64,000 bases of DNA from Selaginella moellendorffii. Taxonomy: Eukaryota; Plantae; Lycopodiophyta. The notes below the pieces were generated by a model, which was not told where the DNA came from, ran no database searches, and saw nothing but the letters and a program-made list of their open reading frames with translations. The position numbers and the translations under genes are program-made. Positions 1,792 through 51,749 of this stretch are shown piece after piece (position 1 is the first letter of the stretch; each line of letters begins with the position of its first letter). The stretch is taken from NCBI RefSeq assembly GCF_000143415.4, contig NW_003314281.1, forward strand, positions 1,158,481 to 1,222,480, given 5' to 3'.

Positions 1792-2937
1792 TGTCGCAAA
1801 TGTGACTTCGGGTATCGAAAGTTACCTGTCGGCTAGTCCTTACGGACACTCTTACCTTATTGCCACGATGGCAAGAGGTCGGTATTGCTGGACCCGTTAT
1901 CAGTCTCCGCCTAAGCTAGTTGAGAAACTGGTCCTCGCGTGTGCACTTGACCAGATGAGCATAAGGAAGGAATTCCTAAGTGTCTATTTAGTCAAGCATA
2001 CTTGACCTGGTTAGAGAAACTCATTCGTTGACTTGCACTTGCTAGTGTTGGGAACCCCCGCGATATTGAGCTTGGTCCCTCAATATCGCTAGATGATAGC
2101 TTACCATGTCTGCCAAACACCCTCGCTATCATGCCCTTTGTGTTAGTCTCATTTCGGTCCTAAATGCTATTTCTGGAAAGTGTCTAGATTTGCTCATTTG
2201 GCATATCTACGGAATGTAGAGATCGGCCTGAACACAATGGTGTTCGTCCCATGTCCAAATTCGCAATCTAGGAACATTCCATATTTAGTAAGTTTCGAGC
2301 TTGTCCCAGAGACTAACTCTTGATACTAAGGGAGGCTTGGGGTGAAAGCCCAAAGCGTGTGTTCCTCAAGGGGGGGGGGGCTATGGGGGGTTCCAAATGT
2401 ATAGTAGGGATAGTGGGTAGGTCGGGCATGGCCGACCAACCTGAGGCATAGTCTAGCTCCCGCTTGCGTGCCTGTCCTTGTTCTGCGTCCGGCTTGGGTC
2501 TAAGCCCAAGTTCCATTCCATGCTAGCTGGTGGAGTACCCATATTCTCACGTTAGGCCACCGGTATGCCGAAATAGCGCCAGACTCTGTTTGGCTCCGTT
2601 TTGCGTGCTGGTCCTGGCATTGGGATGCTGGTTGCTCTAGGACTATTCCAAGTCGCTCCGGGCCCCTGTCCCTTCGCTCCTTGGGCTGTATGCTTGGAAG
2701 TTGCTCCGTGGTTAGGTTCCATCACTCCTTGGCGTCACGCTTGGGAGTTTGGCACCATTCCTTCGTTCAGTGGCCCAAGGCCCTGAACCTCGGGTTCCTA
2801 TGGACACGTGGCACGGACATGTGGCATGTGACACGTGGCATCTGTCACGTGGCACAAAGAGGGTTTATGTTCCGCTTCGTGGTGTTATCCTATGGTAAAT
2901 CACCATAGGATAAAGGGTCAAAACCACGTGCGCTACA
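1792..2937 (+). repeat. Family A LTR (left arm)
   Basis: TG...CA ends, followed by the PBS. Homologous to 7949-9095(-), 11020-12178 and 17092-18217. Confidence 0.92.
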
Positions 2938-5877: not shown

Positions 5878-7948
5878 CATTGATATTGTTGATATTGAGA
5901 TCTGAGTGAAATGAGATATCCTTCCAAGGATTGATATTGAGTTTCATTAGTCTTGATGAATATAGTGTTGATGATTTGGCTATAGCTTTGTGTTGTTGGC
6001 ATTTGTGCATTTTGCTAGTTAGCAACTATGTTGACGTTCAAATGAACTAAGTGGCAAGTTGAGTTAGTTGTGTTCTAGACGAGATTATTTAGTAGAGGAT
6101 TGAGCTTCGGCTTTTCCTTGAAAAGTGATTCAGTTATGGACTATGCTAGCTTTACGAGATGAAGAGTTAGTGATCGCTATTAGAATATTTGAGTCCTTGC
6201 TGGATTTGAGTTGGAATATATATCGATCATGGATGATTCTTCTTGTGCTTGTTATGAAGTGAGTTACGTCTTGGTATAGATGGATTCATGGAGGATCATT
6301 TAGTGATCACTTGTTGAGCATAGCTCCATTGTGCTTAGCTTTTGGATTGATGTAGAAATGCTCTTCATTAGCTTTGGCATTATGAAGTTTGGCTTATGGA
6401 TGTGTTGAAAAAGACATTGTGGGTTGCACCATGATTTCTTCTTTAGCATTGAAGTTAGCTTCTATGAGACTCATGATCATTATTAAGCAAGACTTGGCTA
6501 TAGGCTTCTTCGAGCTTTTGGTTCTTTGAGTTTTCATACTCATTATTCCATTTGTCTGGAGTTATTCGGGGAAGGCATTTTTGGCTCTTTAGCTTCGATG
6601 TTGAAGTTAGTATTTGCATCTAGCAATCATTGGTGATGATTGACTATCATCTGGGATAATTAATTATCTTTGTCAGAGGTTTTTCTTGATTATCGTTGAT
6701 CTAGATTGATTCGCTATTCTTCGGGATGGTGGATTCCTTCTTAGACGATGATTTTGCATCTCTTTATTGATGGGATGATTGATGATCTTTCATGATGGTT
6801 AGTTGTTCTTTTTGATGGCTTATGGCTTTTCACAATACCACATATTCTTTGTGGTTTGCTCTGGATTGGTCTCTTGGGTTTGAGACATCCGTAGGATGTT
6901 GCTAACACTTGCTTAGACAACTTGAGTTCTTTCGTGTTGTTGGCTGGGATCTATTCGGATTGGCTAGTGTAATGGTTAATATGAACAAGCGTTTGTTTGC
7001 TTTGCAACATTCATTTTGTTCTATTGATTATTGCTCGAGTTAGTTCTCATAGATTAGGATGTTATTCCTTCGGGTGATACATTCGCGAGCATTGTGCTTG
7101 TTAGTCAATGATACTTTGTGTTCTTTGAGTTGTGTTTTGTGAGTTGTTTGGCATGCTATCAGCCATTTTCGGTAGTTAAGTTTTATCATTGAGTTTACTT
7201 GATGATATACTTGCTATTGAATTTTGTTAGATGGTGAATTCTATGTTTTCCAATGATAGTGATTTTGGTGGTTCTTATACTATAATACTAGTTTATCGGA
7301 TGATAACTTACTTGGAATACTTTTGTGTTCTAATCTAAGCTTTATTCACTGATAATTAAATCTCTAAGATATCATTGTTTATGACTTTGCTATGTCCATA
7401 TATATTGATCTTTGAGTTTGGGCCAGTATAGGTAGACTGGCTTCGGCACTTCGTGTGCATGGTGAAATCTCTAGTCATGGGGTAGCTACTGTCGACTGGT
7501 CACATAACCCGCCTCTCTGTCGATGTTCCTTGTTCCGTGAAAGGGCGTGACCGTGTAAACAACTCTAAACTACCTGTTGACAGTAGTCTATCTAAACCTT
7601 ACCGACGGGTTTGGTTTCTTTGCTCAGAAGGGTTGGGGCCTCTGGCTCCTCTCTCTATGTCTCTGCGGGCAGAGCATATCACACTTTTGTAGCTGGGTGA
7701 CTCCCAGAGCAGCAGGGGTGGCTGACTTCGTTGGTCATTTCCTTGTCGGTGACGGCCGGAAGGTGTCTGAGCTGGTAACGCATCCGCGTTAGACAAAGAG
7801 GTTCCCCCTAACTCATTTAAGTTGGTGCATTTCTCACATAGTGTGAGTACCGTAAACTTTTTCTGGAGTTGTTTCCTTGGCGGTATTCTAGACTCGAGTG
7901 TGCATCGACGAGGACGTCGATCTTCCTCAAGGGACCTCTGATACCAAA

Positions 7949-9095
7949 TGTAGCGCACGTGGTTTTGACCCTTTATCCTATGGTGATTTACCATAGGATA
8001 ACACCACGAAGCGGAACATAAACCCTCTTTGTGCCACGTGACAGATGCCACATGTCACATGCCACGTGTCCGTGCCACGTGTCCATAGGAACCCGAGGTT
8101 CAGGGCCTTGGGCCACTGAACGAAGGAACGGTGCCAAACTCCCAAGCGTGACGCCAAGGAGTGATAGAACCTAACCACGGAGCAACTTCCAAGCATACAG
8201 CCCAAGGAGCGAAGGGACAGGGGCCCGGAGCGACTTGGAATAGTCCTAGAGCAACCAGCATCCCAATGCCAGGACCAGCACGCAAAACGGAGCCAAACAG
8301 AGTCTGGCGCTATTTCGGCATACCAGTGGCCTAACGTGAGAATATGGGTACTCCACCAGCTAGCATGGAATGGAACTTGGGCTTAGACCCAAGCCGGACG
8401 CAGAACAAGGACAGGCACGCAAGCGGGAGCTAGACTATGCCTCAGGTTGGTCGGCCATGCCCGACCTACCCACTATCCCTACTATACATTTGGAACCCCC
8501 CATAGCCCCCCCCCCCCTTGAGGAACACACGCTTTGGGCTTTCACCCCAAGCCTCCCTTAGTATCAAGAGTTAGTCTCTGGGACAAGCTCGAAACTTACT
8601 AAATATGGAATGTTCCTAGATTGCGAATTTGGACATGGGACGAACACCATTGTGTTCAGGCCGATCTCTACATTCCGTAGATATGCCAAATGAGCAAATC
8701 TAGACACTTTCCAGAAATAGCATTTAGGACCGAAATGAGACTAACACAAAGGGCATGATAGCGAGGGTGTTTGGCAGACACGGTAAGCTATCATCTAGCG
8801 ATATTGAGGGACCAAGCTCAATATCGCGGGGGTTCCCAACACTAGCAAGTGCAAGTCAACGAATGAGTTTCTCTAACCAGGTCAAGTATGCTTGACTAAA
8901 TAGACACTTAGGAATTCCTTCCTTATGCTCATCTGGTCAAGTGCACACGCGAGGACCAGTTTCTCAACTAGCTTAGGTGGAGACTGATAACGGGTCCAGC
9001 AATACCGACCTCTTGCCATCGTGGCAATAAGGTAAGAGTGTCCGTAAGGACTAGCCGACAGGTAACTTTCGATACCCAAAGTCACATTCACGACA
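7949..9095 (-). repeat. Family A LTR (right arm, inverted), preceded by inverted PBS at 7936-7946
   Basis: Near-identical reverse complement of 1792-2937; CTCTGATACCA is the reverse complement of the PBS. Confidence 0.92.
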
Positions 9096-11019: not shown

Positions 11020-14000
11020 TGTTGCAAATGTGACTTCGGGTATCGAAAGTTACCTGTCAACCAGTCCTTTCGGATATTCTTTCCTTACTGCCACGACGGC
11101 AGGAGGTTGGTATTGCTGGACCTGTTATTAGTCTCCACCTAAATTAGTTGAGAAACTGGTCCTCGCGTGTGCACTTGACCAGATGAGCATAAGGAAGGAA
11201 TTCCTAAGTGTCTATTTAATCAAGCATACTTGACCTGGTTAGAGAAACTCATTCATTGACTTGCATTTGCTAGTGTTGGGAACCCCCGCAATATTCAGCT
11301 TGGTCCTTTAATATCGCTAGATGATAGCTTACCGTGTCTGCCAAACACCCTCGCTATCATCCCTTTTGTGTTAGCCTCATTTCGGTCCCAAATGTTATTT
11401 ATGGAAAGTGTCCAGATTTGCTCATTTGGCATATCTACGGAATGTAGAGATTGTCCTGAACACAATGGTGTTCGTCCCGTGTCAAAATTTGCAATCTAGG
11501 GACATTCCATATTTAGTAAGTTTCAAGCTTGTCTCAGAGACTAACTCCTGATACTAAGGGAGGCTTGGGGTGAAAGCCCAAAGCGTGTGTTCCTCAGGCG
11601 GGGGAGGGCGGGGGGGGGGGGGCTGTGGGGGGTTCCAAGTGTATAGTAGGGATAGTGGGTAGGTCAGGCATGGCCAACCAACCTAAGGCATAGTCTAGCT
11701 CTCGCTTGCATGCCTGTCCTTGTTCTGTGTCCGGCTTGGGTCTAAGCCCAAGTTCCATTCCATGCTAGCTGGTGGAGTACCCATGTCCTCGTGTTAGGCC
11801 ACCGGTATGTTGAAACAGTGCCAGACTCTATTTGGCTCCGTTTTGCATGCTAGTCCTGGCATTGGGATGTTGGTTACTCTAGGACTATTCCAAGTCGCTC
11901 CGGGCTCCTGTCTCTTCGCTCTTTGGGCTGCATGCTCGGGAGTTGCTCTATGGTTCGGTTCCGTCACTCCTCGGCTCCATGCTTAGGAGTTTGGCACCGT
12001 TCCTTCGTTCAGTGGCCCAAGGCCCTGAACCTCAGGTTCTGCACCACTATCCTTTGGACACGTGGCATATGACATGTGGCATGTGTCATGTGGCATAAAG
12101 AGGGTTTAGGTTCTGTTTCGTGGTGTTATCCTATGGTAAATCACCATAGGATAAAGGGTAAAAACCACGTGCACTACATTTGGTATCAGAGAAGGAGTCT
12201 CAGCGAGTACTATACAATGAGATTGGGCAACTAATCTCGTTGCATACGCAGAGATGAAAACGATGATCCGAGTGGGTACACGTTTGGGTGCTAAGACTTC
12301 GCAATCGTTCCTTGGGTATGGATTTGGTTACCTTTCATTTTAGATTATGTGAGCTTGCTCTTGGGCTCATAAGATGGATTTGAGTTGTTCCGGTAGCACG
12401 AGGTTGAGCTTGAGCTTGTGAGTGAGGCACATTAGCAACTCAAGGTTACGCTTTGGGTTGGCAGGATTAATGTTAGTCTATTGGTGGTTCCATGAGTGGT
12501 TCCAGTGGTTCCATGAGTTATTCCTTGTACCATGGGTGAAACAAACCTCCCTGGGTTTGCTATGAGTGGCAAATAGGCTGGTCCGTAGCTGTTTAGCACG
12601 GCACTAGTGGATCCTTCATAGGCATGATTATAAGTGGATCAATCAAGACTATAGGGATTAGTCTATTGGTTTAAGTAGTCATGGCCGTGCTCTCTCATAA
12701 ACTTTTCTTTGATTGAACTAAAGGCAGTGCAAAAGCAAGCTTGAGGTTTGGTCAAAGATGAGACCGAAAAGAGAGTCATCGGGACGAAGGATCAAACACG
12801 TAAATCATTTTCTCTTCTTGGAGAGATGATTTGCAATGAGGTGTGATTCATTGCTCGTGTTCATAATATGCAATCAAGAGTCCCTATCTTGGTGCATGTT
12901 GGAAATGATAGTCTTACAAATGGTGAGCTATGCGATGGATAGCGGTGAAGCGCTATACTATTTTGTGGCTTGCTATTGAAAGACTTGGGTTGCAATGTTC
13001 AATTCTTTTCCGGGGAACCTTGTTATTGTTTCTTGAGTAGCTTGGTGTTGGATTAGTGTTGAGTTTGGTCGGAAAGAGAGTGTGAGCTTGTTCGTGTTGT
13101 GAACAAAAGTTAGTGGTGTTAGGTGTCGTAAATCTCTATTGATGGGGTGTGGCATTTATGTTGCATTTTGTTGAATCGAGTTGGCACTTGATATTCACAT
13201 AAACCTTTGCAGTAGTGACATGGGCATTGCTCATAGTGTTGCTTGATTGATGATCAAGTTATTGTGATTTATATCATATCTATGTGATAATGAGCAATGT
13301 GTTTACGAAGTTGCTTGGGTAAATGATGATCAACCCCAAAGTGGTTGATAGAGAAGCTAGTCTACTTGCACGAAGTAGCATTGTAGTAGCTTTGACTGGA
13401 TCTCGATGGTGGTCCATTATGCTAAGCTTAAGTTGGTACTTTGTTCCTTGGGTTTGCCCATAAGTTGTTGGAAAGGTTGTAGCATTCATTTGTTATAGCT
13501 CGTCGGTTGATCCGTTAACACTTGGAATAGATTGTTGGATGGAGAAGATGTGTAGTTGGGGCATTAACATCATTAGCACTTGTGTTAGTGGAAGTGGCAT
13601 TGTTATTTCAAGTGATGAGGGATTTTCCTTAGACCTTGATTTTCCATGTCATTTTTCTTGTTAATGTTTTGACTTCACATTGGATCTTGAAGGTGATTGA
13701 AGAAGAGTGTTAGTGCAATATGGATATCCGAACATGTGGTCTACGTGATCAAGCCTTGGATGTTCATTTTGCACTTTGCAGATGTCGGTGTTGGATATCA
13801 GTTAGATGGGCAAAGATGTTCGATGCTTAAGCATATCGTTGGATCATGAGAATTTATGTTGAGGTGAACTTATATGAAGTTGTAGGTAGGAGGAAGTTGG
13901 TTGAGTTTTGAAGGTTTGCAATCCTAGACTGAGAGTCATTCTTTCTCTAGGATGGAAATTTTCCACAAATTTTCTTAGACTTCTCCAATGGCTGATCTGT

Positions 14001-17000: not shown

Positions 17001-18217
17001 TATGAACTTTTTCTGGAGTTATTTCCTTGGCGGTATTCTAGACTGGAGTATGCATCGACGAGGACGTCGATTTTCCCCAAGGGGGGGAGAGTGTCACGAA
17101 TGTGACTTCGGGTATCGAAAGTTACCTGTCGACCAGTCCTTTCGGATATTCTTTCCTTACTGCCACGACGGCAGGAGGTCGGTATTGCTAGACCCGTTAT
17201 CAGTCTCCGCCTAAGTTAGTTGAGAAACTGGTCCTTGCGTGTGCACTTGACCAGATGAGCATAAGGAAGGAATTCCTAAGTGTCTATTTAGTCAAGCATA
17301 CTTGACCTGGTTAGAGAAATTCATTCATTGACTTGCACTTGCTAGTGTTGGGAACCCCCGTGATATTGAGCTTGGTCCCTCAATATCGCTAGATGATAGC
17401 TTACCGTGTCTGCCAAACACCCTCGCTATCATGCCCTTTGTGTTGGCCTCATTTCGGTCCCAAATGTTATTTATGGAAAGTGTCCAGATTTGCTCATTTG
17501 GCATATCTATGGAATGTAGAGATTGTCTTGAACACAATGGTGTTCGTCCCGTGTCCAAATTTGCAATCTGGGGACATTCCATATTTAGTAAGTTTCGAGC
17601 TTGTCCAAGAGACTAACTCTTGATACTAAGGGAGGCTTGGGGTGAAAGCCCAAAGCATGTGTTCCTCAAGCGGGGGGGGGGGCTGTGGGGGGTTCCAAAT
17701 ATATAGTAGGGATAGTGGGTAGGTCGGGCATGGCCAACCAACCTAAGGCATAGTTTAGCTCCCGCTTGCATGCCTGTCCTTGTTCTGCGTTTAGCTTGGG
17801 TCTAAGCCCAAGTTCCATTCCATGCTAGCTGGTGGAGTACCCATGTCCTCGCGTTAGGCCACCGGTATGCTAAAATAGTGCTAGACTCCGTTTGGCTCCG
17901 TTTTGCATGCTGGTCCTGGCATTGGGATGTTAGTTACTTTAGGACTGTTCCAAGTCGCTTCGGGCTCCTATCCCTTCACTCCTTGGGCTGCATGCTCGGG
18001 AGTTGCTCCGTGGTTCGGTTCTGTCACTCCTCGGCTCCATGCTTGGGAGTTTAGCACTGTTCCTTTGTTCAGTGGCCCAAGGCCCTGAACCTTGGGTTCT
18101 ACACCACTGTCCTTTGGACACGTGGCATATGACATGTGGCATGTGTCATGTGGCATAAAGAGGGTTTAGGTTCCGTTTCATGGTGTTATCCTATGGTAAA
18201 TCACCATAGGATAAAGG
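11020..18217 (+). mobile_element. Non-autonomous gypsy-like LTR element (family A) with normal direct LTRs
   Basis: 5' LTR 11020-12178, PBS TGGTATCAGAG ~12181-12191, PPT AAGGGGGGGAGAG 17079-17091, 3' LTR 17092-~18217 (last ~20 bp lost). Inserted into the LTR of the old host copy. Confidence 0.9.
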
Positions 18218-18757: not shown

Positions 18758-19922
18758 GACATGTGGCGAGTGCATATATTAATCCAACACATAGACAATC
18801 CAATTAACTTAAGCCAGTGAAGGGCGAAGATATCATTTCATTGGTTTCTAGTGGAGCGCTCGTTGCCTTGGTGCTCTTAGGGATTTTGTGGTGGAAGGTG
18901 GTGAGACGATCCAATGCCACCAAGAAGAAGCTCCATCAGGGGGATCTCACTGATAGGTACCAAGAGCTGTACCGAGCAAGGGATTCCAGAGCAAGGTGGG
19001 AGAGGGAGGGTTTGGGACTGTGTTCAAGGGGATGCTGCCCAGCAGAGAGATTGTGGCGGTCAAGAGGATTGGCGGTGGATCGCGGCAGGGGGACAAGCAA
19101 CTTAAGGCGGAGGTGATGTGGATTGGCAGCATCCATCACCTCAATCTCGTAAAGCTGGTTGGATTTTGCCTGCAGTCTCCCCCCAACGTACTTGTCTACG
19201 CCAATGGCTTGCTGGATGGATGGATTTTTGCCAAGGACAAGTATCTGCCCTGGGCAACCAGGCTATCCATCGTGCTCAACGTCACTCGAAGGCTTGCATA
19301 TCTCCACGATGGATGCCACAAGAAGGTACTCCATCTAGACATCAAGCCCCAGAACATCCTCCTGGACGAGAAGATGAATGCCAAAATTGCCGACTTTGGA
19401 TTCTCCAAGCTCATTGACAAGGACAAAACTCATGTCGTGACAGTCATGTGGGGCACAGTGGGATACATGGCTCCCAAGTGGCTCCACTCTCGTGTCACGG
19501 ACAAGACGGACGTCTATAGCTTTGGGATCGTCCTCCTGGAGCTCATGTCCTGCATGAAGGCCGTGGAGTATCCCTCGGACTCACAGATGCACGTTGGGTT
19601 CCTCGCCCAGACTGCTTTCAACAAGCTCGACAGTGGAAACGCCATGCACTTGGTGGATGATCGGCTGGTCAAAGCCGAGGACGGTGGTGGTTTATTGAGT
19701 GGCTTCGAGAACATCATCCGGATCGGGCTATGGTGTGCACAGGAGGATCCTTTGCAGCGACCAACGATGTCTGTGGTGGTGAAGATGCTCGAGGGTGCCA
19801 TGGATGTGTTGGCGTTCCCTCAGCTGGAGAGACCCGCTGCACAGGATTCATCACTCCTGGTGAGCAGCAGCGAGAGCTCGGGATTGCAAATCTCCATCTC
19901 GGTCTCTGACTTGGCTCGCTAA
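18758..19922 (+). pseudogene. 5'-truncated receptor-like kinase (TM + non-RD kinase), paralog of kiwellin-RLK-B
   Basis: TM LVALVLLGILWWK is in a different frame from the kinase ([21 protein letters not shown]). APE is APK and there are small deletions. Sequence matches the reverse complement of 23465-24243. Confidence 0.82.
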
Positions 19923-20459
19923 GTAGATATCTGAAGAATTATGATTGCTTAATAAGTTAATTGAACGGCAATTTACATATATATTTAGAATCCTCAATGA
20001 GAAACCAGGAGGTCTCGAGGCGGAAGATCTGGAGGAGTTCAGCAAATGGCTCAAGAATCATCAAGAGAAACGGCAAGACCTTATAAACAAGTAATGAATG
20101 AATGAGGTATATAAACACACACGGCACGGCGATGGCAACCCTAAAAGTGGAAATGACGGCAATGACAGCAATGCTGGAAGAATTGTACATGCAGCAGCAC
20201 TGCATTCAATTCATGGCTAGAAATCACCAATCTGCCACTTCTCTTTCTTTTTCATGAAAGACCAATGTTGATTTCAGAGTCAGAACAATAAATTTAAAAC
20301 GTAGAATTCTTGCTGTGAAATTAGGTGAAGTGGTAGTAAAAATGAATTAAAAATATTGTGGGTCCACAACAAAGTTCACTGACTAATAAATAAAAATAGA
20401 TGAGCTATTTATTAGTCTTAAAATCTTTTCATATGCAAGCATTTCCAATCTAGCTGCCA

Positions 20460-21240
20460 TAGTCTTGGATCTGGCATCCCATAACTCAGCATCCTGTAGC
20501 TCATGATCAATAAGAAGGTAGTTAGATCCCACGTAGAAGTCCATGTTGCATTCATTGTTCTTCTCCTTGTCTTTCGTGCAGGCATCATCCACCCGAACAC
20601 ATCCATTCTGCCGTTGGAAAGCGCTAAGTCTTGGAGCAGATCTATCTTGAGATGTGATCCAAAGGGATACTTCCCTTCATCTGGAACAGCTATAGACACG
20701 TAAAGCTGCAAGTCGTTCCCTCGACTGCCCTTGGGACCATCAGTCACAGAGTAGTAGGTGCAATCGTTGTCTTCACAATTCACGTAGCGCCCATCCTTCA
20801 ACCTTCTAGGACCCTTCGTGGATTTCTGAACTGAAACCGCCACAGACGGAAGCTATCGCGTTGTCATTGCAATCCTTGATTTCTGTGTTTGAGGCCTCGT
20901 TGCCGCACTCCTCTACAGTCCAGTAGTACGTCTCTGGCTGCCTCCACTGAGAATCCCAGAGCCATGCAAGCGAAAAAGAGCACAAGAGAAGCGGAAGATC
21001 GATGATTTTTAGCCATGAATGAATGCAGCGCTGCTGGCTGTATAATTCTTGCATGACCTCGGAGCACTAGCTTTTATAGGAGCCATGCATCGCCGTGCGG
21101 TGTGGTGTGTGTATACCGCATCTGTTGTGGGACCACCAGCCAGGTGCAATCGTCGTCTTCACCCTCGACGTGGCCTCGTTGGTGCTCCTCGGGAGTCCAG
21201 TAGTACGTGAAACTTTCGCTGGCTGTCTCCACTGAGAATC
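20460..21240 (-). pseudogene. Secreted 3D-domain-like protein, frameshifted copy plus upstream partial duplicate
   Basis: ATG at 21016 (MAKNHRSSASLVLFFACMALGF); ~8-bp deletion after AAR and further frameshifts; paralog of 22399-23262. Confidence 0.75.
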
Positions 21241-21566: not shown

Positions 21567-22016
21567 ATGGAGGTGTCGATTCTCTGTGCTTCATGGTCGT
21601 GCTATGTAGCATCCACTCGCAAGCCCAACAACAGGTATGCTCTTCGTTAAGCGACTGCCTGAATGGATCTCTTTGTTTCCTGGAGCGTTCACTCCAGACT
21701 GCTTTCAACAAGCTCGACAGTGGAAACGCCATGGGTCAAAGCCGAGGACGGTGGTGGTTTATCCTTGAGTGGCTTCGAGAACATCATCCGGATCGGGCTA
21801 TGGTGTGGACAGGAGGATCCTTTGCAGCGACCAACGATGTCTGTGGTGGTGAAGATGCTCGAGAGTGCCATGGATGTGTTGGCGTTCCCTCAGCTGGAGA
21901 GACCTGCTGCACAGGATTCATCACTCTTGGTGAGTAGCAGTGGCTCGGGATTGCAGATCTCCATCTCGGTCTCGGACTTGGCTCATTTGAAGAATTATGA
22001 TTGCTTAATAAGTTAA
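21567..22016 (+). pseudogene. Chimeric RLK fragment: 5' end of kiwellin-RLK-A fused to kinase 3' end of RLK-B type
   Basis: 21567-21695 matches 25126-25283. From 21695 it matches 19607-19920 (TAFNKLDSG...IGLWC...SDLA). Confidence 0.8.
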
Positions 22017-22398: not shown

Positions 22399-23262
22399 CT
22401 AGTCTTGGATCTGGCAGTTCGGATCAATATTGGCATCCCATAATTCAGCATCCTGTAGCTCATGATCAATATTAAGGTAGTTACTCTCAGATCCCACGTA
22501 GAAGTCCATGTTGCATTCATTGTTCTTCTCCTTGTCTTTCATGCAGGCATCGTCCACCCGAACACATCCATTGTGTTGCCTGCCGTTGGGAAGCGCTATG
22601 TCTTGGAGCAGATCTATCTTGAGATGTGATCCAAAGGGATACTTCCCTTCATCTGGAACAGCGATAGACACGTAAAGCTGCGAGTCGTTCTCTCGACTGC
22701 CCTTGGGACCATCAGTCACGAAGTAGGTGCAATCGTTGTCTTTGCAATTCACGTAGCGCCCATCCTTCAACCTTCCAGCACCCTCGACGTGGATTTCTGA
22801 ACTGAAACCGCCACAGACGGAAGCTATTGCACTGCCACTGCAATCCTTGATTTCTGTGTTTGAGGCCTCGTTGCACTCTCCTCTACAGTCCAGTAGTACG
22901 TGAAACTCTCTCTGGCTGCCTCCACTGAGAATCCCAGAGCCATGCAAGCGAAAAAGAGCACAAGAGAAGCCGAAGATCGATGGTTTTTCTGTACAATTCT
23001 TGCATGACCTCGGAGCACTAGCTTTTGTAGGAGCCATGCATCGCCGTGCCATGTGGTGTGTGTATACCGCGTCTGATGTGGGACCATCGGCCACGGAGTA
23101 GCAGGTGCAATCGTCGTCTTGCTTTCCAGCACCCTCGACGTGGCCTCGTTGGCGCTCCTCTGGAGTCCAGGAGTACGTGAAACTCTCTCTGGCTGTCTCC
23201 ACTGAGAATCCTAGAGCCAAGCAAGCGAAAAAGAGCACGAGAGAAGCGTGATTTCTAGCCAT
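22399..23262 (-). CDS. Secreted protein with C-terminal 3D (MltA/DPBB-like) domain; open but rearranged reading frame
   Basis: 287-aa ORF: signal peptide MARNHASLVLFFACLALGFSVETA, then motifs EGAGRLKDGR, YVSIAV, YPFGSHLKI, HNGCVRVDD, MDFYVG. The middle is an out-of-frame second N-terminus, so functionality is uncertain. Confidence 0.6.
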   Translation of the reverse strand: MARNHASLVLFFACLALGFSVETARESFTYSWTPEERQRGHVEGAGKQDDDCTCYSVADGPTSDAVYTHHMARRCMAPTKASAPRSCKNCTEKPSIFGFSCALFRLHGSGILSGGSQREFHVLLDCRGECNEASNTEIKDCSGSAIASVCGGFSSEIHVEGAGRLKDGRYVNCKDNDCTYFVTDGPKGSRENDSQLYVSIAVPDEGKYPFGSHLKIDLLQDIALPNGRQHNGCVRVDDACMKDKEKNNECNMDFYVGSESNYLNIDHELQDAELWDANIDPNCQIQD

Positions 23263-23448
23263 GAATTGAATGCACTGCTGCTGGCTGTACAATTCTTCCA
23301 GCTTTTCCAGCTTCCAGCCATGCGTTGCTGTGCCTGTTGTCATAACATGAAGATTCAGCAACTGAACTCGTACCAACATCAGCATTGGTCTTTCTTGCTA
23401 ATAAAAAGAAGTTTTTGACGAAGCAAATGTTTAAGTCATATTCATTCA

Positions 23449-24866
23449 TTAGTTGTTTATAAGCCAGAAGCCGAGCTTGTTGAAAGCAGTCTGGGCGAGG
23501 AACCCAACGTCCATCTGTGAGTCCGAGGGATACTCCACGGCCTTCATGCAGCACACGAGCTCCAGGAGGACGATCCCAAAGCTATAGACGTCCGTCTTGT
23601 CCATGACAAGAGAGTGGAGCAACTCGGGAGCCATGTATCCCACTGTGCCCCGTGAGTTTTGTCCTTGTCAATGAGCTTGGAGAATCCAAAGTCGGCAATT
23701 TTGGCATTCATCTTCTCGTCCAGGAGGATGTTCTGGGGCTTGATGTCTAGATGGAGTACCTTCTCGCGGCATCCATCGTGGAGATACGCAAGCCCTCGAG
23801 CGACGTCGGGAAAGCCTGGTTGGCCAGGGCAGGCACTTCTCCTTGGCAAAAATCCATCCATCCAGCAAGCCATTGGCGTAGACGACTACGTTGGGGGGAG
23901 ACTGCAGGCAAAATCGAACCAGCTTGACGAGATTGAGGTGATGGATGCTGCCAATCACCTCCGCCTTAAGTTGCTTGTCCCCCTGCCGCGATCCACCGCC
24001 AATCCTCTTGACCGCCACAATCTGTCCGCTGGGCAACGTCCCCTTGAACACAGTCCCAATCCCTCCCTCTCCCACCTTGCTCTGGAATCCCTTGCTCAGT
24101 GAGATCCCCCCGATGGAGCTTCTTCTTGGTGGCATTGGATCGTCTCACCACCTTCCACCACAAAATCCCTAAGAGCACCAACTAGAAACCAATGCAATCA
24201 CTGGCTTAAGTTAATCATGCGTTGGATCAATATGCCACATGTCTTAATGGTTGCGCCGCCCTTAACCTCTTCAAATGACTTGCAACACATTATCAAAATA
24301 CGTCTGGCCCAGCCCTTCCCACACACCTCTCGTCCCTCCCAACGATCTGGGCGTGCACGGCTCGTAGTATCCGCCACCGTCGCCGTGACGCTCATCCCAT
24401 TCTCTGCCGTGATCACAATCTCTTTGAAGCACGAGGATCCACTGGCAAACCATCCGGTGGCCATGTTTGCCAGGAGCTCCGAGTTCTTGTAAGGCGTGGA
24501 TTGATTGCATGCCGTGGGGAGTTCCTCCAGCTTGATGTAGTAGAAAGCCGCGAAGTTGAGAGACTGCTCTTCAGGGGAGCAATTGAAGAACTGATAGATG
24601 TTGTTGCCGATGCAGTACTCGGGATTGTGGGCAGTGGCATTCGAGTTGACGAAGGTCTTGCCGGGCTCGCAGCCGGGAATTGGGCAGGAAAGGGTGCTAG
24701 CTCCTGGATCGCCATCGTAGGTCTTGCTAACAGGATTGCAAACGAGGCCGCTAGAACAATCGCGCCTAGAGTCGCATCTCGTGCCGCAAGAGGAGGAGAA
24801 TTGCTGCGCGGTGGCGCTGGCGAGTGAGGTCATCGCTGGCGCGAAGAAAGTGCTGCAATGATCCAT
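23449..24866 (-). pseudogene. Kiwellin-RLK-B (kissper/kiwellin ectodomain + TM + non-RD kinase), frameshifted and 3'-truncated
   Basis: CDSRRDCSSGLVC, FNCSP, ATGWF...C.K.I.ITAENG.SV.A.VAD; then in another frame PCTPRSLGGTRGVWEGLG; TM VLLGILWWK; kinase motifs split over three frames. Confidence 0.82.
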
Positions 24867-25125
24867 GGCTGGAATTGCAAAAGGTAAACTGGTTTAAACG
24901 CTGAAGTCTTTGCGGTCTCAAGATCGAAGCTTTTGACTTGTTAAAGCATTGCGGGTCCCTTGGAGGAATTCCTCTTTTCGTCTGCCATCCCAGAAAAACC
25001 ATGACACTGAAAGATACCTGAAGCCAGCTGCCAAACATTAAGTCTGTGACGAGAGAGACGTGATCTCATAGTTTCTGATTTTCTATGGTTTCCAGGTGCC
25101 CAAGAACAGTGGTATTTACTAAACT
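24867..25125. promoter_or_regulatory. Putative bidirectional promoter between the two kiwellin-RLKs
   Basis: 259 bp between divergent ATGs (24866 and 25126); a second copy lies at ~21270-21566. Confidence 0.55.
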
Positions 25126-27045
25126 ATGGAGGTGTCGATTCTCATGTGCTTCATGATTGTGCTATGTAGCACCAGGAGCTTCCACTCGCAAGCCCAACAA
25201 CAGGTATGTTCTTCGTTAAGCGACTGCCCGAATGGATCTCTTTGTTTCCCGGAGCCCATGCTCAGCGGCAACCGTTCACTCCGCAATTCATCCTGCTACC
25301 TATCGAACAATCAATCCGAGCCATATCTCAGCGATTCTGAAGCTTGCAAGCCCATCTCCAGCGTCATTTTCAATGCCACCATCGGTCCAGACTGCCCGAA
25401 TTGCTGCGTCCCAGGCCTGGCTTACAGGTATTTCACCTGCTCTCCAAATTTACAAGGGACCAACAATGCCGTCCTCTATGTCACAAGCTTCAACCTCTCA
25501 AATCCGGGGTCTCTCAGGCCGTGCACGTCCTCGGAATGGAATAGGGAACCCATGGCAGCGCTGGCCACTGGATGGTATAGCCAAGACCGAAGCTTGTGCT
25601 CGAAAAACATCCAAGTTTTAGCTCCAAACGGACGGACTGCGGTGGCTAGAATGGTGGCTGAATGCTACTCCCCAGACGGGTGTCTCAGGGATCATTCGTT
25701 CACGGAGCCCTGTGCTCCAAACGCTGTGGCTGCGAACGAGCAAGTGTGGAGGCAGCTTGGGTATGATCCAGGCATTGGAATCTTGAGAAATATCACCTGG
25801 AATGTCATTGATATGAATCTTCCACAGTCCATTCGAAGCAAAAAGAATTATCTGGGAGTGATCTCTGGGGTAGCAAGCGCTGTGGCCGGGGTGGTGCTTA
25901 GCGTCGTAATCTTCGTAGCAACCAGGAAGTGGAGAAGATCTCGGAGGAGGCGCATGGAAAAGCAAGCGCTCATCGAAGGAATGAGGCTCGATGAGATACT
26001 TCCGCACCAGTTTAGCTATCACGACTTGAAGATGGCAACTAGAAACTTTGATCCCGAGCTCATGCTTGGAGCTGGAGGATTTGGATCCGTCTTCAAAGGA
26101 GAGCTTGCGGATGGGAGCCTCGTTGCTGTGAAGAAGATGGACGTAGAGATCCAAGGCTCGTCGAAAGGACACTCGCAGTTCAAGGCCGAGGTAATGTCCA
26201 TTGGCAGCATTCACCACTTCAACCTGGTAAAGCTCCGGGGATTTTGCATCCAGGGACCAGCTGCATTGCTTGTCTACGAGTTCATGCCCAATGGATCACT
26301 GGACAAGTGGATCTTCACCAAGAACGATGATGACAAAGGTGGCGGATCAGCAAATCTGCTGTTAAACTGGAACCAGAGACACTCAATCGCGATAGATGTT
26401 GCTCGAGGACTCACATACCTCCATGAAGGATGCCGGGAGCAAGTTCTTCACCTGGATATCAAACCTCAAAACATCCTCCTGGACGAGAACTTACGAGCCA
26501 GAATCTCCGACTTTGGCCTGAGCAAGCTCGCCGAGCGGGGAAAGAGCCAAGTGGTGACTGTCATGCGAGGAACTCCCGGATACATGGCACCCGAGTGGCT
26601 CCACACTAAAGTCACGGACAAGACCGACGTTTACAGCTTTGGAATCGTGCTGCTCGAGCTCGTCAGCTCCAAGCGGACCATCCAGTTCCATCCTCCATCC
26701 TCCTCTTCCTCCTCATCCTCCTCGCAACCGCGCTTCCTGGGCGAAACCGCGCTGAGCATGTTTCACAGTGGCAACGTCGTCGAGCTTATTGACGACAAGC
26801 TCCTGGACGATGATCTCGCCAGCACTAGCACTGGCTTGGAGCTCAAGGATGCCGAGAGGTACGTGAAAATCGGACTGTGGTGCATCCAACTCGAGGCAGC
26901 AATCCGCCCCTCCATGAGAAACGTCCTGGATATGCTTGAAGGTAACATAGACGTTCTTGACTTGCCACCACCTTCAAGTGATGGTAGCTCCAGAAGCTTC
27001 AGCTTGCGACTACCTGGATCCTACTTCAGCTCCACTCGTCTGTGA
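25126..27045 (+). CDS. Kiwellin-ectodomain receptor-like kinase (non-RD), 639 aa, intronless
   Basis: Signal peptide; CSSLSDCPNGSLC (kissper-like); FTCSP, ALATGWY, C.KNI.V.A.NG..A.A..V.EC.S..GC..DH....PC, VW..LG, ITW (kiwellin/ripening-related); TM then RKWRRSRRRR; [31 protein letters not shown] all intact. Confidence 0.92.
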   Translation: MEVSILMCFMIVLCSTRSFHSQAQQQVCSSLSDCPNGSLCFPEPMLSGNRSLRNSSCYLSNNQSEPYLSDSEACKPISSVIFNATIGPDCPNCCVPGLAYRYFTCSPNLQGTNNAVLYVTSFNLSNPGSLRPCTSSEWNREPMAALATGWYSQDRSLCSKNIQVLAPNGRTAVARMVAECYSPDGCLRDHSFTEPCAPNAVAANEQVWRQLGYDPGIGILRNITWNVIDMNLPQSIRSKKNYLGVISGVASAVAGVVLSVVIFVATRKWRRSRRRRMEKQALIEGMRLDEILPHQFSYHDLKMATRNFDPELMLGAGGFGSVFKGELADGSLVAVKKMDVEIQGSSKGHSQFKAEVMSIGSIHHFNLVKLRGFCIQGPAALLVYEFMPNGSLDKWIFTKNDDDKGGGSANLLLNWNQRHSIAIDVARGLTYLHEGCREQVLHLDIKPQNILLDENLRARISDFGLSKLAERGKSQVVTVMRGTPGYMAPEWLHTKVTDKTDVYSFGIVLLELVSSKRTIQFHPPSSSSSSSSSQPRFLGETALSMFHSGNVVELIDDKLLDDDLASTSTGLELKDAERYVKIGLWCIQLEAAIRPSMRNVLDMLEGNIDVLDLPPPSSDGSSRSFSLRLPGSYFSSTRL

Positions 27046-27244
27046 TGTTACCCTCTAGTTCTCACAGTGAGACCATGATCATCAAGACCAAGATAGAGTC
27101 TCGCAAGTGTTGACGTTATATTGACAGAGGGAAGTCACCTTCTTCCAAGTTTTTCTACTTCTAGCCAGCGGGAACGAGGAAGCATACCTGGAGACAATAT
27201 ACATTTCAAAGAATCAAGGGTCTTCGTCCGCACCACCATCAGCC

Positions 27245-28150
27245 TCATAAAATCTGAAGTTGGGTTCTACCTTCATTGCCCATGGCCAGCAATGACTTAC
27301 TAAAAACCTGTGATCCAAATCTCCTGCCTCAGTAAGAGAAATGAAAGTACGAAGTGCCGGGTTACCTTCTCAATGGGGATTTCATGTCGCTTGCACCAAG
27401 CGACTGTTCTTTGAGGATCCTTGTAGTTGATCTTTGACGTTCCCAGTGCCACGATATGAGATCTTCTTTGACGGACAGATCCAAGGTCATCTTGGCTATC
27501 CTTGCATCAGTTTGAGCCAACTTCTTTTCCAACCTAATAGTCAAAAGTAGAAACTACTTACAGTTCTGCGGTTGGAGGCCTTTTAGCCGTGGTGTGAACT
27601 GGATGTTTGCCCTTTTCAACTTTCCCCAAGTTCCTCACGCAGTGTCTGCCAATAGCAAAGCATCAGCCTCAAACAAACCATAAAGAAAAACGGACCTTTA
27701 ACTCTGCAATCTTTGCCTCCATTCTTTCCATCTGAGCACTATAGCCCTTGGATACTGTCCATTGATGATTACATGGAATCGTGACTTGTCAAAAAAGTGC
27801 TAACCAAACAGAATGTTCTCTTACCTCCTTATTTGCTTGGGAGTATTCTGCAGTTTTCTCGTTAAGAGTCACACCAAGCATCTCCGTCAACTGTAACAAG
27901 TAATTTTTCAGATCATTTTGGCCTTGACAAAGTAAAAGTCACCTGTGCTGTTCAGATGGGCATTAAGATTAGAAGTATCTAACTTATCAAAGAGGTCAAC
28001 CCCTTCCTTTTTCCTTGTGTAACAAACAACTCATCTCAATGAGGACAGCACAAGTCACAACATACCTTTCTTGAAATAGTGTATAGCATCATATACCTCT
28101 TACAGAGTTTTGATACCTGGTGGAATCTTTACCCAGAAAATCAAATTGTA
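27245..28150 (-). pseudogene. TOP1: DNA topoisomerase IB C-terminal fragment with introns
   Basis: Exon pieces FDFLGKDS, LFDKLDTSNLNAHL, CNHQWTVSK..AQM, LEKKLAQ...KEDL / [37 protein letters not shown]. It has frameshifts, lacks the TAKVFRTYNAS segment and is cut off at the 5' end by a gypsy remnant. Confidence 0.85.
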
Positions 28151-28169
28151 AACATGTGAACCATACATA

Positions 28170-30830
28170 GATCACAACAATGATGTTAAAGAAGTTCCCA
28201 AAGCTTGTCATAAATTCCTATGAGGAGGTGTGGCAAGTGGATATAATGGAACATGAGATTCCAATTAAGTAAGGAGCAAAGCCAGTGGCTCAAAAACTAT
28301 ACAAATTAGTGACCTCTAAAGTTTGATATTGTTTCTAAGTTAATGAAGTTAATCAAAGCTAACTTCATATCTGAAGTGGAGAATTCAAATTGGGTGTCAC
28401 CTGTTATAATAACACTAAAGAAGGGAGGGAAATGGAAAATATATATCAACTATAAAAAGTTGAATGATGCTACATGATGTGATCATCATCCCATTCCATT
28501 CATGGATGAGATCCTTGATAAAGTAGCATGGCATGAGTGATACACTGTTTCTAATGGATACTCTAGATATTTTCAAGTTTGCATTTGGGCTCACAAATGC
28601 ACCAACAACATTTCAACGACTCATGAACAAAATTTTTGAACTGTACCTGGGCAAGTTTATTAGTGTACCTTGACGACTCTTGCATATACAGAAACTGAGT
28701 AACTCATTTGGAAAAGGAATAAATAACATTTGAAAGGCTAGATGAATTAAAAAGTTGCTAAATCTGGAAAATGTCAAATTGCAAGCACAAAAGGTACATT
28801 AATTGGTCATATAGTCTCTAAAGAAAGAATTAAACCAAGCCAAAATAAGATACAAAAGTTGGTGGAAATGCCTATTAAAAAAGGTACAACAGTTTGTAAG
28901 ACTGGTGAGTTACTATCGATAGTTTGTTTAGGGATTTGCTGAAATAGCATTTCTCTTAAACAAACTTTTACCAAAAAAAGAAAGCTTTAGTTGGATAGTA
29001 GAGTGTCAAGACATTTAAAAACTTGAAGAAAGTGCTAAGTTCAACCTTGATTTTGGTGGCACTATGTTGGGATGAGACTTTCTATGTGAACATAAACATT
29101 AGCAAGTATTTTATCACAATGATTCTATTCCAAAAGGGGAGTAGAGGATATATGTTTCCCGTCTACTATATTGGCTGACAACTTCAAGGACATGAGCTAT
29201 GTTATCCACTTTTGGAGAAGCAAGCTGCAAATATCATATATATGGTAGAGAAATTTAAATGCTACTTGTGAGGAAGGCATTTTGTGTTCCTACAGATAAT
29301 ACTATATTAAGGTATATTGCAAATAAGCTAACACTTGTTGGGAAGTTTTCTAGATAGATGACAACTTTAGTAGAATATGACTTTAAGTTTTAATATGAGA
29401 AAAACACTCAAGTAGGATTGATTGGAGCTTTGGATTATAAAATACCTCTAGAGCAAAAAGAGATTAATCTATGCCAAGAAAAAGATCATGAAGTCTTAAC
29501 AATGAGTGTTGATATGGAAAAATATTGGGATATTTACAACTTTTTAGGAATATATAGTTTTCTAGAAGGTTATAAAGGCATTGAAAAGCAAAAAATTATA
29601 TTCAAGTCAAAACCATTCACACTAATCAAAGATCAACTTTATTGAATTGGATGAGATAGCATGCTTCGGAGAGAAGTTGAACAAAACGAATGAAAAGAGA
29701 TCATAAAGCAATGTCATGAAGGATATTATGGTGAACACTTCTCCCATAATTATACTATCAAGAAGATTGTGAATGTAGAATATTTCTGGCCAACATTATT
29801 CTAGGATGTGAAGGAATGGTGCAAGTTATATTACATTTGTTAGGCCTTTGAAAGAAGAATCCTTCAATCAGGAAGTCTCCATCCAAATTTGCCAACAAGA
29901 CTATTTGAGAAATGTGGGATAAATTTTAAAGCACCAGTTCTAATGGCATCAAATCAGAAAAGATTTATTTTGGTGGCAACAGACTACCTTACTAAGTGGG
30001 CTAAAGAAGTAATAACTAAAAGCAATACCAAGGAAGTTGTGGTAAACTTTCTTGTCCAAAATATATGCACAAGGTTTAGTTACTTGTTAGAGATTGTCAT
30101 TGACTAAGGCTCACACTTTTGCAAAGAGATGGTTAAAACACTAATAAAGAAGTTATTAATAAAATATTGATAGTCAACATCATGCTATCCACAAGCTAAT
30201 GGGTTGGTGAAGAGAACAAATGGTGTATTGGGCAACATTCTAAGAAAATTGAGTGCCAAAAAGAAAAAAGATTGGACAATCGCTATTGATAGCATTATGG
30301 GCTTATAAAACCACATATAAGGTAACAATAAACTTCATTCTTTTCTAGCTAGTTTATAGGATAGAAGCTATATTTCCAATTGAGTTGGAGATCCCAAGTT
30401 TATGATTAGCACTGAAGCATGGATTAAGTGACAATGAGGACTTGCAATTAACACTTATTTAACTTGAAGGGATGGATGAAAATCAACATCAAATTTTTCA
30501 ACATATAAAAGCAATTCAAGAAAGCACAGATTTAATAAGAAATTTACAAAGCTTTTCAGGTTTGCAATTTAGTTATGAAGTATGATAGCAAGATTGACAA
30601 AACATTCACAAAAAAGTTTCTTTTGCAATAGGATGGCCTATATTAAATTGTTGAGGTCAACAATAATGGATCATACTTGCTAGCAAATCTTGATGGAGAA
30701 TAACACAACACTTGACTAAATGGATATAGGTTAAAAATGTTCTATGTTCATCTAAAAGATAATATTACCATTGGGTTGCAAACAACCCATATAGCTTATA
30801 ACTATATAGCTTGTTTGGGTGGGATTATGT
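28170..30830 (+). mobile_element. Heavily decayed Ty3/gypsy pol (RT-RNaseH-integrase)
   Basis: Remnants WVSPVII..KK..KW...INYKKLN, GL.NAP.TFQR.M, ILVATDYLTKW, YPQANGLV.R.N, many stops; purine tract near 30817-30825. Confidence 0.85.
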
Positions 30831-49794: not shown

Positions 49795-51129
49795 TCATCT
49801 TTTCTTGGAGCTGAGGTACAAGCATACTCCGACTGCTGTCAACGAGGCCGATGCTGCCAAAATCGGTAACCCGTAATCTGCTGATGCAAGCTCTCTCTTT
49901 CTCAACTTTCTTCTTGCAGCCTCAAGCTCCGTTCGAAGCTGCGAAGTGCTAGCCTCGCTCTGCTCCAAGGTGTCCGTCAGCTCGACTATTCTCTCCCTCA
50001 TTCGGGTAACTTCCTCTTTTGCATGCTTTGATGCCTCCGCAGACGTGGTACTAAGCCTTCTCACTTGAACTTCCAGGGCCTTTTTGTTATCTCCGACTGC
50101 AAAGAGCTGGGTCTCGAGCTTTGATATCTGGAGCTGTTTCTGCTTGAGCGCTTCGACCACCCTCCACACGGAGTTCCTCAGGGTGGCGTAATCCTTTTCA
50201 AGCGTAGTGCCACTTTTTTGAGCCTGACTTATCTGCCCGACAAAGAGAGGAAGTGCCGTGGCCGCGAACTCTGGATCACCACTGTTATCACCAGCGTCAT
50301 CGGCTGCCATGGTTCTCACGTCCTTGTTTAGCTTGGAGAGCATTTCAGCGAGCTGGAGCTCCTGAGTTTCCAGCTCCTGGCACTGCTTCTGAGTCGAGGC
50401 CAGGGCGGTCTCAAGCTTTCTATTGTGCTCCTTGACGACGTCGCCTTCTTCTCGCAACACGTCCAGCATGCTGGTGGCGTTTATGATCTCCTGCTTTGCT
50501 GCTGCCACGGCCTCCGTTAACCTTTGCAGCTCTTCCTCGACGATCTCCTTGGTGAACTCGGGATGGAAGTGCTCGTCCCCGGTAGCATGAACCTCGCTGG
50601 AAGTAAGTTGCTCTAACTCTCTGCTCAGGCCATCGATCTTACTAATCACATCTGCCATTGCATTTTCAGCGTCCTCGGCTCTCTGCAAAACACTCGACAA
50701 GTCCCGGTTATTCCGATCCTTCTCGACATGAAGCTGCTGCTTGAGCTGGTCCTGGACCTCAGAAGCCTTGATGCTCACTACCTGAAAGCGCCCACCGAGC
50801 TGCTGGATCTCCCGCTCCAGCGCCTCGTTCTTCAAGTCCATGGTATGCAACTCGTCCTCGAGCTCGTCGATCTTGACAACGTAGTAGTGCCTCTCGGCGT
50901 GCAGCATGGACATCTCCTGCATCAGCGACTCGTTGAGCTGCGAGAGATTCGACGCCTCATGGGTGGCGGTGAGCTTTGTAGTGTTCTTTTGCACAGATTT
51001 CCTTGGGGGGCTCTGATGGTTTTTCTTGCTGTCTAGCGCAGGAGAGCGCGGCGAGGACGACATATCTGACGAGATGTATCCTTCGTCGACATAGAAACTT
51101 CCCTGTTGGCGAACCATTGTGTCAGTCAT
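49795..51129 (-). CDS. Long coiled-coil protein with C-terminal TM anchor (possibly PMD1/2-like)
   Basis: Single-exon ORF, heptad-rich, ending LPILAASASLTAVGVCLYLSSKKR. The family call is tentative. Confidence 0.7.
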   Translation of the reverse strand: MTDTMVRQQGSFYVDEGYISSDMSSSPRSPALDSKKNHQSPPRKSVQKNTTKLTATHEASNLSQLNESLMQEMSMLHAERHYYVVKIDELEDELHTMDLKNEALEREIQQLGGRFQVVSIKASEVQDQLKQQLHVEKDRNNRDLSSVLQRAEDAENAMADVISKIDGLSRELEQLTSSEVHATGDEHFHPEFTKEIVEEELQRLTEAVAAAKQEIINATSMLDVLREEGDVVKEHNRKLETALASTQKQCQELETQELQLAEMLSKLNKDVRTMAADDAGDNSGDPEFAATALPLFVGQISQAQKSGTTLEKDYATLRNSVWRVVEALKQKQLQISKLETQLFAVGDNKKALEVQVRRLSTTSAEASKHAKEEVTRMRERIVELTDTLEQSEASTSQLRTELEAARRKLRKRELASADYGLPILAASASLTAVGVCLYLSSKKR

Positions 51130-51749
51130 CTTGGTAAGATCTCTCACTCTCTCTCTCTCGCTTCCCCTTTTTTTTCTACGACTTCCAGGCAGAGAGATTG
51201 ACGCAGTGACTCTGTGTTTCCTACAGGCTATCATCGAGAGTTCTTACCACCGAGATGAGTGCTTTGCGAGAGAGACAAGCCTCCGAGCAAAGCGAAGAGC
51301 CGGATCGAATGGAGGAATCCTTGGAGAGGCTGAGAGAACTAAAGGGGAAGAGGGGATTGATCGAGGAGACGAGGCAGCCACAGTCCGAGCAAGGCGAAGA
51401 AAGCGAGAGAAAAAATGGAGTCTTTTTGGAAGAGAACTCGCGGGGTGCCATGCCATGCCCACCCGTTCAATTGAATTCCACGTCATTACCGCGTGGGGTT
51501 GACGTGGAGATGACGCTACTGGCCACGTCGGCATGACTAGATGCTAAAAAAGGGAAAGATTCTACTATAAATTCGCAGCTAGGGCAAGCGATCTGGATGG
51601 ACGAAATTCTGGATCTGGAGCAGCGATCGCCGATCGCAAGGCGCCACAGCGTAAGGCTTTGCTCCTCTGGGATTCCCGCAGCTCGGATCTACGCGGCTCG
51701 GCGGAGGAGCTGATCGTTCGATCCATCCAGGGTTTCGATCGGCGCAGCG

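Follow-up and report, generated by a model that had tools for sequence, protein, structure and literature searches.

A receptor-like kinase with a kiwellin ectodomain in the genome of Selaginella moellendorffii

Results

The stretch of Selaginella moellendorffii DNA analysed here (contig NW_003314281.1, positions 1,158,481 to 1,222,480 of the forward strand; 64,000 nucleotides, called the window below, with position 1 at its first letter) carries an intact single-exon gene for a type-I, single-pass receptor-like kinase (RLK), composed of a kiwellin ectodomain, a transmembrane (TM) helix and a motif-complete kinase. The coding sequence, at 25126..27045 on the forward strand, is supported by its open reading frame (ORF), by Pfam matches and by public contigs. 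A preliminary description of the window had proposed one uninterrupted ORF, and the frame indeed runs for 639 codons plus the stop, with zero internal stops. The N-terminus, claimed there to be a signal peptide, is indeed hydrophobic: residues 1-19 have a mean Kyte-Doolittle (KD) value of 1.59, and a putative signal peptide was placed at aa 1-21 (25126..25188) on hydropathy only. It is followed by a Cys-rich leader (aa 22-64; 25189..25317) with 4 Cys and 4 N-glycosylation sequons, which corresponds to a degenerate kissper-like region, and by the kiwellin domain itself (KWL1, a double-psi beta-barrel or DPBB; aa 65-225; 25318..25800), recognised by Pfam, by matches to PDB entries, by its predicted fold and by 10 Cys. 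The protein has one strong TM segment, as predicted (aa 244-266, KD 2.48), and directly after it come the basic residues RKWRRSRRRR (aa 267-276), a stop-transfer stretch; the two together occupy 25855..25953. This order fits a topology with the N-terminus outside and the C-terminus inside the cell. Of the eight N-x-S/T sequons in the protein, all but one are in the ectodomain, within the N-terminal 240 residues.

The kinase domain, of the Ser/Thr SD-2b type according to Pfam, tree and motifs, covers aa ~309-606 (26050..26943). The Pkinase match reaches 146.9 bits and is split by a poly-Ser insert. All the motifs that the preliminary description regarded as intact were located, including HLD in place of HRD: GAGGFGSV (315), VAVK (333), HLDIKPQN (442; 26449-26472), DFG (462), APE (488) and RPSM (594). 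The Gly-loop and the subdomain-XI Arg are in place, and the kinase is thus predicted from its motifs to be catalytically complete. The poly-Ser insert (26698-26724) consists of nine serine codons between kinase subdomains IX and X; a slightly larger interval, 26689-26726, was flagged as repeat in the read-contig mapping, and contigs break there.

The kiwellin assignment, made earlier from the letters alone, was borne out by three comparisons. The Pfam model KWL1 (PF24300, Kiwellin-1) matched aa 65-225 at 80.2 bits, against a gathering cutoff of 27, over model positions 37-199 of 202. When the ectodomain alone was compared with all PDB sequences, maize KWL1-b (6TI2, E 8e-24) and maize KWL1 (6FPG, E 2e-22) were recovered, and kiwifruit kiwellin (4PMK, 4X9U) was matched as well. 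An AlphaFold2 model of the ectodomain, built on a 27-row alignment and having a mean pLDDT of 69, was compared by Foldseek, and the top nine matches were all kiwellin chains, from 6FPG, 6TI2, 4X9U and 4PMK (E 9e-12 to 1.6e-10; TM-scores of 0.69-0.86 normalised by the target), with 6FPG in first place (E 9e-12, TM-score 0.83). After them ranked expansins of bacteria and fungi, loosenin, cerato-platanin and barwin. All ten core kiwellin Cys positions, seven invariant and three nearly invariant columns, are occupied. The leader had been described as a kissper-like Cys knot, and this stands in part: its 4 Cys show the spacing C-x5-C-x5-C and it contains an insertion bearing glycosylation sequons, but HMMER did not align it to the kissper part of the PDB kiwellins, and we consider it degenerate. 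In a second paralog type, represented by the protein P0016, the alignment to kiwifruit kiwellin starts at residue 2 and the kissper is canonical.

A 280-aa protein from the zygnematophycean alga Closterium sp. NIES-65 (P0141) matched the target ectodomain at E 4e-29. Physcomitrium and Selaginella are named as the oldest holders of kiwellins in PMC9813671; the Closterium match suggests that the kiwellin fold is older than land plants.

The nearest kinase matches outside the kiwellin group were SD2-5 and 'RLK-Pelle-SD-2b' proteins, and a quick kinase tree placed the target within SD-2b, in line with the placement expected beforehand and apart from the LRK10L, cysteine-rich RLK (CRK) and wall-associated kinase (WAK) type rows. 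HLD was read in 80 of the 94 related kinases carrying the motif, lectin-type and thaumatin-type members included; being a feature of the whole clade, it gives no specific information on this gene. None of the usual companions of this kinase was found in the target, which has no Pfam match to B_lectin, S_locus_glycop or PAN, nor to thaumatin (PF00314); its sole ectodomain match is KWL1. The best match is P0001, a S. moellendorffii protein of 635 aa that is 94% identical and that NCBI names 'G-type lectin S-receptor-like kinase SD2-5' though it is devoid of a lectin domain. KWL1 and Pkinase also occur together in eight further Selaginella proteins, and the automatic names of these orthologues ('G-type lectin S-receptor-like...') are misnomers.

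Transcription was examined by mapping assembled contigs from four runs (X1, X2, X6, X7) of four studies on positions 22800-28700 of the window (5,901 letters). Coverage was continuous over about 25101-27330 and absent in the four runs over 22800-23390, 27331-27527 and 27922-28700; short patches outside the target gene fell on paralogous sequence. Three single contigs bridge ectodomain, TM helix and kinase (X1 25101-26614, X2 25436-26688, X7 25734-26591), so that the fusion is spanned by contigs whose label as RNA is a guess. A contig of run X6 skips two stretches of the 5' leader on the forward strand, of 63 nt (24884..24946) and 54 nt (25042..25095), both bounded by GT..AG, as expected of spliced RNA. 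Short introns are typical of Selaginella. The contigs are ~98% identical to the window, and over 26727-27120 one of them agrees with it at every letter; of the window 31-mers, 57% occur in the best public run. The contigs give neither strand nor expression level. We conclude that the gene is transcribed across the ectodomain-kinase junction. An artefact of gene model or assembly was considered and ruled out by the continuous ORF, by a 94%-identical ORF in assembly GCA_000143415.2 and by the junction-spanning contigs.

The two halves of the protein evolve at different rates. Against P0001, dN/dS was 0.63 in the ectodomain (22 nonsynonymous to 10 synonymous changes) and 0.13 in the kinase (7:16; Fisher p 0.007); against a copy on the S. 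moellendorffii scaffold L003, it was 1.67 (17:3) and 0.26 (7:8), respectively (Fisher p 0.027). Between close paralogs, and with these small counts, evolution is therefore faster in the ectodomain than in the kinase. Purifying selection acts on the kinase, which indicates that the target is not a dead gene.

To see how far the combination extends, the ectodomain was searched exhaustively with HMMER against 1.84 billion cluster representatives, which returned 190 clusters with E <= 0.001. Of the long proteins that were listed, those fused to a kinase came from Selaginella clusters and from one eudicot cluster only; the remaining ones consisted of repeated kiwellins or of what look like merged gene models with F-box/LRR or CAP/alginate-lyase parts. 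The architecture is thus rare among the matches listed and not a widespread class of receptors. The wider range was visible only in the exhaustive search, a word-indexed search having returned close Selaginella paralogs only.

The eudicot group comprises Cuscuta campestris P0040, a JGI contig and several Logan contigs of 1.9-2.0 kb; P0028, P0026, P0034 and P0138 are transcript contigs of this group. In the cactus Carnegiea gigantea (JAKOGI010000032.1), a full kiwellin-RLK of 579 aa is encoded in one ORF (L005, 8034-9776) and is 95.5% identical to P0028. A free kiwellin gene lies 4.4 kb downstream of it (L005, 14217-14777), and the deposited model P0122 (515 aa) wrongly joins the RLK ectodomain to this downstream kiwellin, omitting the kinase. 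The Cuscuta gene (OOIL02002078.1) has two exons (L004, 6001-6852 and 7122-8027) and sits between unrelated housekeeping genes; its closest relatives are cactus-like sequences. The eudicot proteins share the design of the target, namely KWL1, TM helix and SD-2b kinase with HLDIKPQN. Unlike the target they have no kissper-like leader, and their ectodomains (KWL1 150-185 bits) share 55-65% identity with ordinary kiwellins of eudicots but 27-32% with the Selaginella ectodomains.

In the kinase tree every kiwellin-RLK belongs to the SD-2b clade. Within it the Selaginella kiwellin-RLKs form a Selaginella-only clade (Shimodaira-Hasegawa-like approximate likelihood ratio test, SH-aLRT, 99), and the eudicot ones form a clade of their own (SH-aLRT 100), which is nested among SD2-5-type kinases of angiosperms. 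A joint kinase clade was rejected by the approximately unbiased (AU) test, for a group that was named after the tree was seen (p 3e-6; p 8e-4 after removal of P0118, a Selaginella lectin-RLK on a long branch). The tree of the kiwellin domain, computed without a duplicate fragment, did not reject a single clade of RLK ectodomains (AU p 0.64); an earlier rejection (p 1e-4) was discarded as an artefact of a fragment identical to P0007 that had been left outside the group. The ectodomain tree being uninformative, the evidence for two origins comes from the kinase tree and the levels of identity, which make it likely, though not proven, that the fusion of kiwellin and SD-2b kinase arose twice, in the lycophyte and the eudicot lines.

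The target lies among degraded relatives. At 260 bp upstream, in head-to-head orientation, a P0016-type copy encoding a kissper-kiwellin RLK occupies 23473..24866 on the reverse strand and is a pseudogene; it was delimited from the sequence and from tblastn matches in frames -3/-2/-3, has at least 3 frame changes and has lost ~100 C-terminal residues. On the forward strand, a P0016-type copy without ectodomain (18817..19922) retains TM helix and kinase (81% identical to the P0016 kinase), with a frame change and APE altered to APK, and a chimeric remnant (21584..21992) joins a target-type signal peptide and leader to the C-terminal end of a P0016-type kinase. Three dead or partial copies are thus found within 8 kb of the target, which sits in a small lineage-specific family forming a birth-and-death cluster, with duplication and decay.

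The head-to-head arrangement of a target-like gene (type A) and a P0016-like gene (type B) was found in the window and on two S. moellendorffii scaffolds, L002 and L003. In the window and on L002 alike, an intact A stands beside a frameshifted B. On L003, A ends early and is devoid of kinase subdomain XI, whereas B is intact, with aa 1-602 in one frame (7058-8851). Both members are clearly intact at none of the three loci examined. The DNA of the window is 86-95% identical to two loci of GCA_000143415.2, to which it is, by this measure, probably paralogous or allelic. A complex prediction for the target ectodomain with that of P0016 scored 0.00 and, having been run without controls, counts neither way.

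The truncated copy on L003 (GL377719.1, 10001-11764) follows the window up to aa ~561, then differs from it and stops prematurely, with loss of subdomain XI. Loose contig ends at 26808, present in all four runs, read exactly like this L003 allele, so that expression of the truncated L003-type form seems likely.

Adjacent to the pair of kiwellin-RLKs, a Cys-rich ORF of 328 aa with a hydrophobic N-terminal region lies at 22399-23385 on the reverse strand, with a degenerate copy at 20383-21128 on the same strand. Related ORFs stand beside the other S. moellendorffii pairs (L002, 6735-7328; L003, 6064-6681). No Pfam match, to the 3D domain or to any other, was obtained for the 328-aa ORF even at E 5, and the 3D-domain identity proposed for it is thus without Pfam support. 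A repeat of ~400 bp occurs in four copies in the window (1827-2221, 8666-9060, 11055-11453 and 17127-17525) and again on L003 (13842-14239), beside a chromodomain/Tf2 ORF; these repeats are probably long terminal repeats of retroelements flanking the cluster. The other genes of the window look ordinary: a coiled-coil protein (49795-51234, reverse strand), an ArfGAP exon (51750-52574, forward strand), a MYB-CC exon (53465-54118, reverse strand) and an exon of an FtsH-like AAA ATPase (60902-62329, reverse strand).

Discussion

The gene at 25126..27045 joins an ectodomain homologous to a secreted defence protein, of the pathogenesis-related (PR) type, to the kinase of an RLK. The preliminary description had noted that kiwellin is not among the standard classes of RLK ectodomains, and we found no kiwellin-RLK in the searchable papers on kiwellins and on RLKs. 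A description of such a receptor was absent from openly searchable full texts, subscription journals being outside this scope, so that 'unreported' is provisional; a survey of pattern-recognition receptors (PRRs) in 350 genomes and surveys of RLKs and S-domain receptors leave kiwellin unmentioned. PMC9813671 counts 61 larger kiwellin-domain 'fusion proteins', among which kiwellin-RLKs may figure; 30 of these, about half, are given as having three to four times the size but 'no further domain'. The kiwellin-RLK architecture is implicitly visible in the domain annotations of databases. Provisionally, then, the class appears to be undescribed in the searchable literature.

What such a receptor might perceive can be approached through the one kiwellin mechanism known so far, the inhibition of the Ustilago chorismate mutase Cmu1. 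Maize KWL1 binds and inhibits this secreted fungal enzyme (PMC6419657, PMC9813671), and among kiwellins effector binding or inhibition was shown only for ZmKWL1 and KWL1-b. By analogy, the kiwellin barrel, which by its topology faces the apoplast, would act as a ligand-binding module, and its most likely ligand would be a protein secreted by a microbe. Once bound, this ligand would switch on the kinase, probably together with a co-receptor, as in other RLKs of the non-RD kind. A passive defence protein would thereby have been converted into a signalling sensor, for which PR5K, an RLK with a thaumatin ectodomain, is the closest precedent. We regard a kiwellin-RLK sensing a secreted microbial protein as the best explanation as a whole, and would put its chances at about even. 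The integrated-decoy function proposed in the preliminary description, in which the ectodomain serves as a bait for effectors, is plausible by the same analogy. The word 'decoy' is imprecise, since kiwellin is a known binder and inhibitor of an effector rather than an effector target. The arguments for an effector bait are circumstantial, consisting of the fast-evolving ectodomain, the birth-and-death cluster and the recurrent fusion. The recurrence of the same fusion, with the same kinase clade, in a lycophyte and in eudicots (cactus, Cuscuta) suggests a combination that is useful rather than accidental.

Several points weigh against the proposal of an effector-sensing receptor or weaken its support. 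The HLD motif, taken earlier as a pointer to a PRR of the non-RD type, is a weak one, for it is shared by the SD-2b clade whatever the ectodomain (80 of 94), and we have dropped it as special evidence for a PRR role. The contrast in dN/dS comes from pairwise Nei-Gojobori estimates with few substitutions. When the sites that vary among close paralogs were mapped on the ectodomain model, loops were not enriched relative to strands and helices (22 of 99 against 17 of 62, p 0.46). The four runs (assemblies of 23-56 Mb) were labelled RNA by guess, and some contigs may stem from an allele or a near-identical paralog, given the ~98% identity. The structural matches to expansins, loosenins and cerato-platanins, all DPBB proteins, would make a glycan ligand equally compatible with the modelled structure. 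Finally, the role of the nearest analogue, Arabidopsis PR5K2, is in drought signalling (PMC6822995), and a PR-type ectodomain is therefore no proof of an immune role.

The main rival concerns the ligand. The barrel could bind poly- or oligosaccharides of plant or microbial walls and report wall damage or microbial glycans, as would suit a fold whose next structural neighbours after the kiwellins are expansins, loosenin, cerato-platanin and barwin, and whose DPBB relatives are described as carbohydrate binders (PMC6419657). However, no kiwellin has been shown to bind or hydrolyse carbohydrate (PMC6419657), the sole known kiwellin ligand being a protein, Cmu1, and a receptor for glycans or wall material seems to us unlikely, while being the alternative to be taken most seriously. 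Somewhat more doubtful is a receptor with a PR-type ectodomain acting outside immunity, in abiotic stress or development, for which the drought function of PR5K2 offers a precedent and the stress and developmental roles reported for SD-2b members (PMC10152718) a background; fast evolution of the ectodomain and turnover of copies are commoner traits of receptors engaged in conflict with microbes than of those for development.

A third possibility is that A and B, divergently transcribed, form an obligate unit of two receptors, a sensor and a helper. The head-to-head arrangement in the window and on two S. moellendorffii scaffolds speaks for such a unit, but the partners decay in a complementary manner, none of the three loci having both clearly intact, and we hold an obligate pair to be improbable, slightly more so than a non-immune receptor. 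That the target is itself a decaying member, open but unused, like the pseudogenised copies all around it, is very improbable in view of its open 639-aa ORF, complete set of catalytic motifs, kinase dN/dS of 0.13-0.26 and whole-gene contigs in four studies.

Returning to the sensing of a secreted microbial protein, a broader proposal would be that kiwellin-RLKs constitute an undescribed class of effector-bait receptors at the cell surface, in which a soluble inhibitor of effectors has been attached to an SD-2b kinase and its capture of an effector turned into a signal, a design that arose at least twice (once among lycophytes and once among eudicots), with the A/B pairs of Selaginella working like sensor and helper receptors of the nucleotide-binding leucine-rich repeat type (NLRs). 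We advance it as a speculation, and its chances are low.

A kiwellin placed on an RLK suggests that, at the cell surface, capture of an effector could feed directly into signalling, in parallel with the integrated domains of NLRs and the thaumatin of PR5K. It also offers a practical handle, as the receptor ectodomain could serve as a bait for kiwellin ligands and chimeric receptors as a read-out of binding. Databases would gain from the correction of the 'G-type lectin S-receptor-like kinase' names and of the mis-joined cactus gene model.

Comparison with known systems places the target between several of them. It shares family and fold with maize KWL1 and KWL1-b and with kiwifruit kiwellin (6FPG, 6TI2, 4PMK, 4X9U), at 31-35% identity and TM-scores of 0.83-0.86. 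Known kiwellins are free secreted proteins of ~150-190 aa, treated as free apoplastic proteins in a commentary (PMC6419657), whereas in the target a TM helix and a kinase are attached to the domain. In the target sequence, the Gly-rich loop GGDGGG is shortened, and the kissper part is degenerate and rich in N-glycosylation sequons. With the SD-2b RLKs (SD2-5 and G-type lectin S-receptor-like kinases) the target shares a kinase that is 42-50% identical, the same HLDIKPQN and the same single-exon habit; their ectodomain is made of B_lectin, S-locus-glycoprotein and PAN, and the target has a kiwellin instead.

The principle is that of PR5K, in which a secreted PR-type fold, thaumatin/PR-5, has likewise been reused as an RLK ectodomain (PMC6822995, PMC3048497). 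PR5K differs from the target in the fold of its ectodomain and was characterised in Arabidopsis; the kinase clade of the target also holds a thaumatin-RLK, P0116. CHRK1, with a chitinase-like ectodomain, and the CRKs, with Gnk2/DUF26 domains, also display PR-type folds on RLKs. With NLRs carrying integrated domains the target shares the concept of a pathogen-interacting domain fused to a signalling chassis, and the head-to-head genes recall paired NLRs. The chassis is an NLR in the one case and a cell-surface RLK in the other, with kiwellin in the putative role of an effector binder rather than an effector target.

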